A stretch of 64,000 nt of DNA from Blastocystis sp. Blastoise. Taxonomy: Eukaryota > Protista > Bigyra: Opalinata. Shown one piece after another: positions 37,427 through 37,505 of the stretch. Within the stretch, counting starts at the first letter, position 1. The number at the start of each line of letters is the position of its first letter. The position numbers and the translations under genes are program-made. Below the pieces are notes generated by a model that was given only the letters and a program-made list of their open reading frames with translations, was not told the DNA's origin and did not search any database. The stretch spans positions 558,001 to 622,000 of the forward strand of contig JBBPEB010000027.1 of NCBI GenBank assembly GCA_039096225.1, given 5' to 3'.

Positions 37427-37505
37427 GTTACTCAGAATACAGAGAAGAATTAAACATCAGGATTCAGTCGAAAGATGGTGATAACTTTTCTTTCCTCATT
37501 GTAAT
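37427..37505 (-). ncRNA. Box C/D snoRNA; D' guide for the LSU rRNA Am807 equivalent (snR39/snR59-like) and a second (D) guide antisense to a U6-like sequence
   Basis: Minus strand: TTAC-A-ATGAGGA(C)...TCACCATCTTTCGA-CTGA(D')-ATCC-TGATGT(C')-TTAATTCTTCTCTGTATT-CTGA(D)-GTAA. The D' guide pairs with the conserved LSU sequence CGAAAGAUGGUGA. Confidence 0.85.

Follow-up and report, generated by a model that had tools for sequence, protein, structure and literature searches.

In the genome of Blastocystis sp. 'Blastoise', the last of three box C/D snoRNAs clustered on the minus strand (snoRNA A) is predicted to be a guide for a U6 position that is off the published methylation maps with which it was compared and that is central to the recognition of 5' splice sites. 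This position is the C of the ACAGAGA box, C42 in human numbering. We consider it probable that snoRNA A is a dual C/D guide which methylates both LSU A857 and U6 C42 by the D+5 rule. According to this reading the D' element would direct a conserved 2'-O-methyl-A in the LSU, while the D element would bind U6 across G38-A50, enabling the fibrillarin snoRNP to methylate the ribose of C42. This would probably happen during the nucleolar maturation of U6, as for the known A47 site, and Cm42 would be expected to stiffen the helix between U6 and the donor modestly. Expression of snoRNA A, its assembly into a snoRNP, the methylation of U6 C42 and any effect on splicing are what we infer from the DNA.

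Genomic setting of the snoRNA cluster

The window, i.e. the whole stretch of 64,000 nucleotides that was analysed, corresponds to G000:C2:558001-622000 of the AT-rich, 33.3 Mb genome of Blastocystis sp. 'Blastoise'. This organism is probably the Russian-tortoise isolate Rus-B, for which a genome of 33.3 Mb with 23.1% GC has been reported, together with longer introns in tortoise isolates (PMC12129017). At 45856-46275 lies an exon of a proteasome alpha subunit that shares 100% identity with NCBI WA158_000275 from Blastocystis sp. 'Blastoise'. Positions 36836-36874 lay outside the later searches and analyses.

The cluster occupies the interval from the stop codon (37201-37203) of a gene on the plus strand to the following gene at about 38.8 kb. 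All three snoRNAs (A, B and C, Table 1) stay under the Rfam gathering scores, yet each matches a C/D family at E < 5e-4. The D' guides of both snoRNA B and snoRNA C point at LSU G855, situated two bases 5' of A857. SnoRNAs B and C carry the identical mismatch at guide position -3 against the LSU, and no convincing D-guide target was found for either. SnoRNA B is also closely flanked by GTATAT and TAG (37616-37534, minus strand), with six bases from its D box to the TAG. We speculate that it may be the intron of a non-coding host, its D box CUGA doubling as branch site.

Two further observations concern the neighbouring genes. A gene with PH-like and kinase domains (32222-35250, plus strand) ends a few bases before the next ATG (35253 onward), an unusually tight spacing in a genome whose intergenic spacers are long. 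At 39698-43597 (plus strand) there is an asparagine-rich exon of 1299 codons with no Pfam match and no relative found by word search.

Table 1. Positions of snoRNA A, its elements and other loci discussed in the text (window coordinates unless another locus is named)
Feature	Position	Strand	Evidence or remark
Core of snoRNA A (68 nt) from the C to the D box; two guides, snR39/SNORD32/Me28S-Am982 type	37432..37499	-	
C box AUGAGGA, one deviation from RUGAUGA	37493..37499	-	sequence
Terminal stem, 4 bp, UUAC/GUAA	5' arm 37504-37501, 3' arm 37431-37428	-	
D' guide and D' box CUGA (37467-37464)	37464..37481	-	13 Watson-Crick pairs with LSU
C' box CUGAUGU	37454..37460	-	sequence
D guide, predicted antisense to U6 G38-A50 (human numbering), reads UCUUCUCUGUAUU	37436..37448	-	
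D box CUGA	37432..37435	-	sequence
snoRNA B, SNORD96-family-like	37543..37604	-	D' guide to own LSU G855, mismatch at -3
snoRNA C, tandem duplicate of B	37664..37725	-	64/65 compared bases identical
L073 C/D snoRNA	L073:1477-1543, G000:C3 ~1271475-1271541	+	D' guide to LSU A2476, D guide to U6
Further snoRNA-like locus that repeats the D' guide and D' box of snoRNA A	G000:C15:1161096-1161112	-	pattern match
METTL16-type gene with NPPF motif	L030, G000:C29:1203006-1204096	-	

Architecture and family of snoRNA A

SnoRNA A has C and D boxes next to a short stem, internal D' and C' boxes and antisense elements of at least 10 bases, as expected of a box C/D snoRNA. We regard it as real because the boxes are canonical and accompanied by the terminal stem, and because its D' guide matches a conserved site in rRNA with 13 of 13 pairs. 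In detail, all 13 pairs between the D' guide and the LSU are of the Watson-Crick type (-22.0 kcal/mol), and the targeted base is A857 of the organism's own LSU, which we take to be yeast A807. This is the Rfam Me28S-Am982 site, the A in CCGAAAGAUGGUG, and thus the D' guide has the target that marks this group.

The best Rfam match is snoMe28S-Am982 (RF00535, clan CL00054, snR39/SNORD32-type) with 37.2 bits and an E value of 3.6e-4. SnoRNA A shares with this family the D' guide CACCAUCUUUCG-A-CUGA, the LSU target, the size and the box layout, but its D guide, which is antisense to U6, has no relation to that of the Rfam consensus. On its D' side snoRNA A therefore acts like the family, but it is not a formal member, as the gathering score is 49 bits.

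Pairing of the D guide with U6

U6 is single-copy as judged by Rfam match (G000:C21:551506-551617, 94 bits) and includes GAUACAGAGAAGA (canonical GAUACAGAGAAGAUUAGC). The D guide forms 12 consecutive Watson-Crick pairs with it, starting at position -2 and preceded by a U:G pair at -1 (-17.3 kcal/mol). The guide is in exact register with the D box, and its position -5 (G37440) stands opposite C46 of the organism's own U6, which is human C42. The original prediction, made from the window alone, had placed a C/D guide antisense to the U6 ACAGAGA box at 37432-37448, which are exactly the D guide and D box of snoRNA A on the minus strand. It had counted 12 of 13 pairs plus one G:U against the invariant U6 segment and had pointed to the C of ACAGAGA by the D+5 rule; the same duplex and the same target base recur with the organism's own U6, where the expected sequence is indeed present. 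Its further proposal of a bifunctional rRNA/U6 guide holds as a prediction, the D' side having 13/13 pairs with the LSU and the D side 12 plus one G:U with U6.

When the guide was shuffled with its composition preserved, 12 pairs on U6 were reached in 19 of 500,000 cases (P 3.8e-5), and the analytic P is about 8e-6. Assuming about 100 free guide slots, some 0.004 such U6 matches are expected per genome. Among 338 CUGA sites in own DNA sampled, the D box of snoRNA A is the only one at which more than 7 pairs with U6 are formed. As a prediction from sequence, the target of the D guide is statistically strong.

Two other interpretations of the locus were discarded. A U6 pseudogene on the plus strand does not fit, as the match stops where the D box starts and the remaining locus is a minus-strand snoRNA. 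Likewise, an internal D-like box that would bring the guide into the A47 register is not found in the sequence.

Alternative targets

The true target of the D guide could be another RNA, such as the organelle SSU rRNA, an mRNA, a tRNA or a different snRNA. The scan for such targets covered three copies each of the SSU and the LSU, one stretch of ITS/5.8S, U1 and the two organelle rRNAs. Among the nuclear targets, the longest Watson-Crick run from position -2 was 5 for SSU and LSU, 4 for ITS/5.8S and 3 for U1, and counting G:U pairs raised the nuclear rRNAs and U1 to at most 8 to 10 pairs. The better target in nuclear rRNA that would have spoken against the original prediction was thus not found. 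A match to SSU helix 17, possible in other species, is absent here because the organism's own SSU differs at that place.

The organelle SSU offers a run of 13 pairs, three of them G:U, in which the base at +5 is also a C, but its pure Watson-Crick run is only 8, and nucleolar snoRNPs do not, to our knowledge, reach organelle rRNA. In addition, RATACAGAGAAG occurs at fifteen places in the genome besides U6 and the snoRNA A locus, each of which might be seen as a target. However, a control pattern occurs 10 times, so that this count is near chance, and the places checked overlapped with no tRNA or Rfam RNA. Taken together, we consider another RNA as the true target very improbable. As a side observation, a single contig (G000:C9:20439-32820) contains two matches to organelle-type SSU rRNA that are oriented against each other, which suggests that the organelle genome has an inverted repeat or was duplicated in the assembly.

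A second predicted U6-directed guide and related loci

SnoRNA A does not seem to be the only rRNA guide with a D side directed at U6. The snoRNA found in L073 has a D guide that forms 12 Watson-Crick pairs and one G:U pair, with one mismatch (at -6), in the register of A74 of the organism's own U6, and it pairs more weakly with 5.8S, too. A74 corresponds to A70 in human and A64 in S. pombe, which are both methylated, and the guide for S. pombe A64 likewise has one non-canonical pair (PMC5855946, PMC10484740). By prediction, rRNA guides of this organism thus address U6 through their D side. Both snoRNAs also have the spacer D'-AUC-CUGAU in common. Next to the L073 snoRNA, the cluster includes a guide to LSU C2487 and RNAs resembling SNORD24, SNORD52 and snoR1. 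A pattern made of an A47-type U6 guide and a D box gave three exact matches (G000:C16:204159, C29:1001369 and C34:173856) against none for the control, which may be chance.

The genome has a second, snoRNA-like copy of the D' guide and D' box of snoRNA A on C15. No intact U6 guide lies beside the D' guide of this copy as judged from the pattern matches, which means that the two paralogs do not have the D side in common.

This bears on the possibility that the complementarity of the D guide is due to chance or non-functional, that only the D' guide works and that U6 C42 is left unmethylated. Many C/D snoRNAs have one idle guide, and the C15 copy lacks an intact one for U6; in addition, the guide of snoRNA A is pyrimidine-rich and this part of U6 purine-rich, and 863 of 500,000 shuffled guides reached 12 pairs when all nuclear rRNAs, U1 and U6 were allowed as targets (1.7e-3 per guide). 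Some well-paired guides moreover leave their endogenous targets unmodified (PMC8522698). The P of 3.8e-5 for U6, obtained with the composition preserved, the exact register against the D box and the presence of another D guide that is directed at an established methylation site of U6 argue against this possibility. We regard it as rather unlikely, though still of appreciable weight, mainly because a well-paired guide does not guarantee methylation of an endogenous RNA (PMC8522698) and because of the missing U6 guide in the C15 copy.

Search for orthologues

A pattern scan of metagenomes for orthologues yielded 34 matches, none of which had the C and D boxes in place, and word searches with two neighbouring exons gave no relatives. 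Protein queries were searched exon by exon: the unique exon of the kinase gene gave three weak, unrelated matches, while the proteasome-subunit exon reached other Blastocystis lineages, in which synteny is lost directly behind this gene in the direction of the cluster. An orthologous snoRNA A locus was found neither in the metagenomes nor by synteny. The sequences L098-L103 belong to a Blastocystis lineage with 43-46% GC, introns of about 60-70 nt and GTATAT or GTATGC donors, and are syntenic with 45-59 kb of the window; this lineage would be well suited as an outgroup for comparing the conservation of the guide.

Donor sites and U1

Introns were predicted in 200 kb of own DNA with an ab initio gene parser that is neutral to donor positions +3 to +8, and the numbers given here refer to 227 well-flanked introns, which as predictions include errors. 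The position +5 is A in 66%, U in 19% and G in 10% of them, and U is found at +4 in 76% (86% of those starting with GTA). GTATAT starts 110 of the 227 introns (48%), or 61% of the GTA-starting ones (110/180). The original statement that most donors are GTATAT with A at +5 is therefore roughly right. The three introns of the NCBI-annotated proteasome gene start with GTAAAC, GTATAT and GTATAT. For comparison, of 50 GT introns listed consecutively for ST1, 28 had G+5 in a hand count, and the donors there are very mixed (PMC5608401 S11 Data). G+5 is thus largely given up in the Blastoise isolate, in a genus that was already lax.

Within introns, GTA is followed by TAT in 35 of 103 cases versus 110 of 180 at donors, and the GTATAT donors are partly due to the TA-rich composition of the introns. 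UAU is found at +6 to +8 in 76 of 133 donors with A+5 versus 4 of 19 with G+5. GUAUAUAU can pair at +6 to +8 with U1 A1-U2-A3 and U6 A39-U40-A41, but also follows the TA-repeat composition. In a genome-wide sample (e.g. window 29096-36308) many introns start with GTATATAT, finish with ATATATAG and have interiors of TA/TAT repeats; with the former start, positions +6 to +8 are able to pair with both U1 and U6. The 5' end of U1 is canonical, and U1 and U6 are unchanged, so that any adaptation must lie in modifications or proteins.

In the spliceosome structure, U6 C42 faces intron position +5. The original prediction had suggested that the guide might tune U6 for non-consensus donors, in which case Cm42 would have evolved to help U6 accept A at +5. 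The predominance of A and the scarcity of G at +5 compared with ST1, the position of C42 opposite +5 and the unchanged U1 and U6 are in line with this. However, a 2'-O-methyl group leaves the Watson-Crick face unaltered, so C:A remains a mismatch that a ribose methyl cannot repair. The UAU at +6 to +8, which pairs with U1 and U6 and goes with A+5, is a simpler compensation. Furthermore, the donors track the TA-rich intron composition, and those of ST1 are already degenerate. An adaptation to A+5 is therefore, in our opinion, improbable.

METTL16 and the neighbouring m6A43

A METTL16-type gene with an NPPF motif is kept in the genome although donors with U+4 dominate. Loss of METTL16 accompanies a preference for U+4, and m6A:U pairs are unfavourable (PMC10581693, PMC11732430). 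The guide of snoRNA A spans the whole METTL16 motif UACAGAGAA, and its binding, or the methyl group at C42, might lower m6A43 and leave an unmethylated A43 to pair with U+4, the base present in 76% of the predicted introns and 86% of the GTA-starting ones. S. pombe C36, the C42 equivalent, stacks on a METTL16 residue, and its mutation lowers methylation (PMC12371086). No METTL16 contact to the 2'-OH at this C was found in the passages compared. Two yeast groups have kept METTL16 despite a strong preference for U+4 (PMC10581693), which makes a special antagonist unnecessary. In addition, the m6A is added early in U6 biogenesis and thus possibly ahead of the snoRNP, its interdependence with 2'-O-methyls being unknown according to a 2025 review (PMC12001972).

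We give this antagonism a small probability; it is at least as plausible as the adaptation to A+5. If true, an RNA guide would achieve what budding yeasts reached by loss of METTL16. Both proposals presuppose that snoRNA A is a dual guide and add a purpose to it.

Possible significance

Going one step further, this lineage might have gained snoRNA-guided Cm42 along with the shift to GUAUAU donors, the mark either steadying the helix between U6 and the donor across the C:A mismatch at +5 or suppressing m6A43 so that A43 pairs with U+4. We put this forward tentatively, as the sequences make it conceivable rather than likely. If true, it would be a guide-RNA route to a retuned 5' splice site preference with U1, U6 and METTL16 unchanged. 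Within the ACAGA of U6, m6A43 is the only modification reported in the literature compared, and whether a species has it goes along with how its splice sites have evolved. A ribose methyl at C42, which reads G+5 and contacts METTL16, would be a second way to tune the helix between U6 and the donor, and it would provide a natural test of the interdependence between 2'-O-methyls and m6A in U6. Since the organism is available in culture and donor usage differs among its relatives, both near and remote, the idea is directly testable. Should the C42 mark be absent, snoRNA A would be an ordinary rRNA guide.

Comparison with known U6 modifications and guides

The C of ACAGAGA, presumably C37 in Arabidopsis, is on none of the U6 methylation lists of human, Arabidopsis, S. 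pombe and Tetrahymena, in line with the original prediction, which had the known U6 2'-O-methyls start at A47. Human U6 carries ribose methyls at A47, A53, G54, C60, C62, C63, A70 and C77 (PMC5855946, PMC7960923), while RiboMeth-seq of Arabidopsis U6 gave U27, A43, A48, C57, C63, A65 and G75 (PMC8053127). The sites in S. pombe are A41, C55-C57 and A64 (PMC10484740), and in Tetrahymena there are two in the 5' stem-loop (PMC3273799). A literature search gave nothing on Blastocystis snoRNAs and nothing relevant on U6 Cm42; as subscription papers were mostly beyond its coverage, the novelty of the latter is unproven.

Among the closest known systems are mgU6-47/SNORD7, S. pombe snoZ30 and N. crassa CD11 of the snR53 family, which like snoRNA A are C/D guides adjoining or covering ACAGAGA (PMC5855946, PMC10484740). 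Dual rRNA/U6 guides are already known as well, since CD11 also guides rRNA sites (PMC2780460). These guides, however, methylate A47 (A41 in S. pombe), whereas the site predicted for snoRNA A is C42, the register being different because its D box is five bases further along; by the D+5 rule snoRNA A therefore does not belong to the mgU6-47/SNORD7 group. SnoRNA-guided ribose methylation of U6 is also performed by S. pombe sno530 (A64), Arabidopsis SnoR26/SnoR126 and human mgU6-53/mgU6-77 (PMC5855946, PMC8053127, PMC10484740), but these act in the ISL or the U4/U6 pairing region, whereas snoRNA A would act in the ACAGA that binds the splice site.

Another modification inside ACAGAGA, the m6A43 set by METTL16, is tied to 5' splice site preference across species (PMC10581693, PMC11732430). 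It is a base methyl made by a stand-alone enzyme and faces +4, in contrast to the predicted ribose methyl at C42, which would be RNA-guided and face +5. Finally, the Tetrahymena snoRNA TtnuCD21 provides an example of a protist-specific U6 2'-O-methylation at an unconventional place that was predicted from the snoRNA and then verified (PMC3273799). Its sites belong to the 5' stem-loop and are thus remote from the catalytic core, whereas the site predicted for snoRNA A is within ACAGAGA itself.
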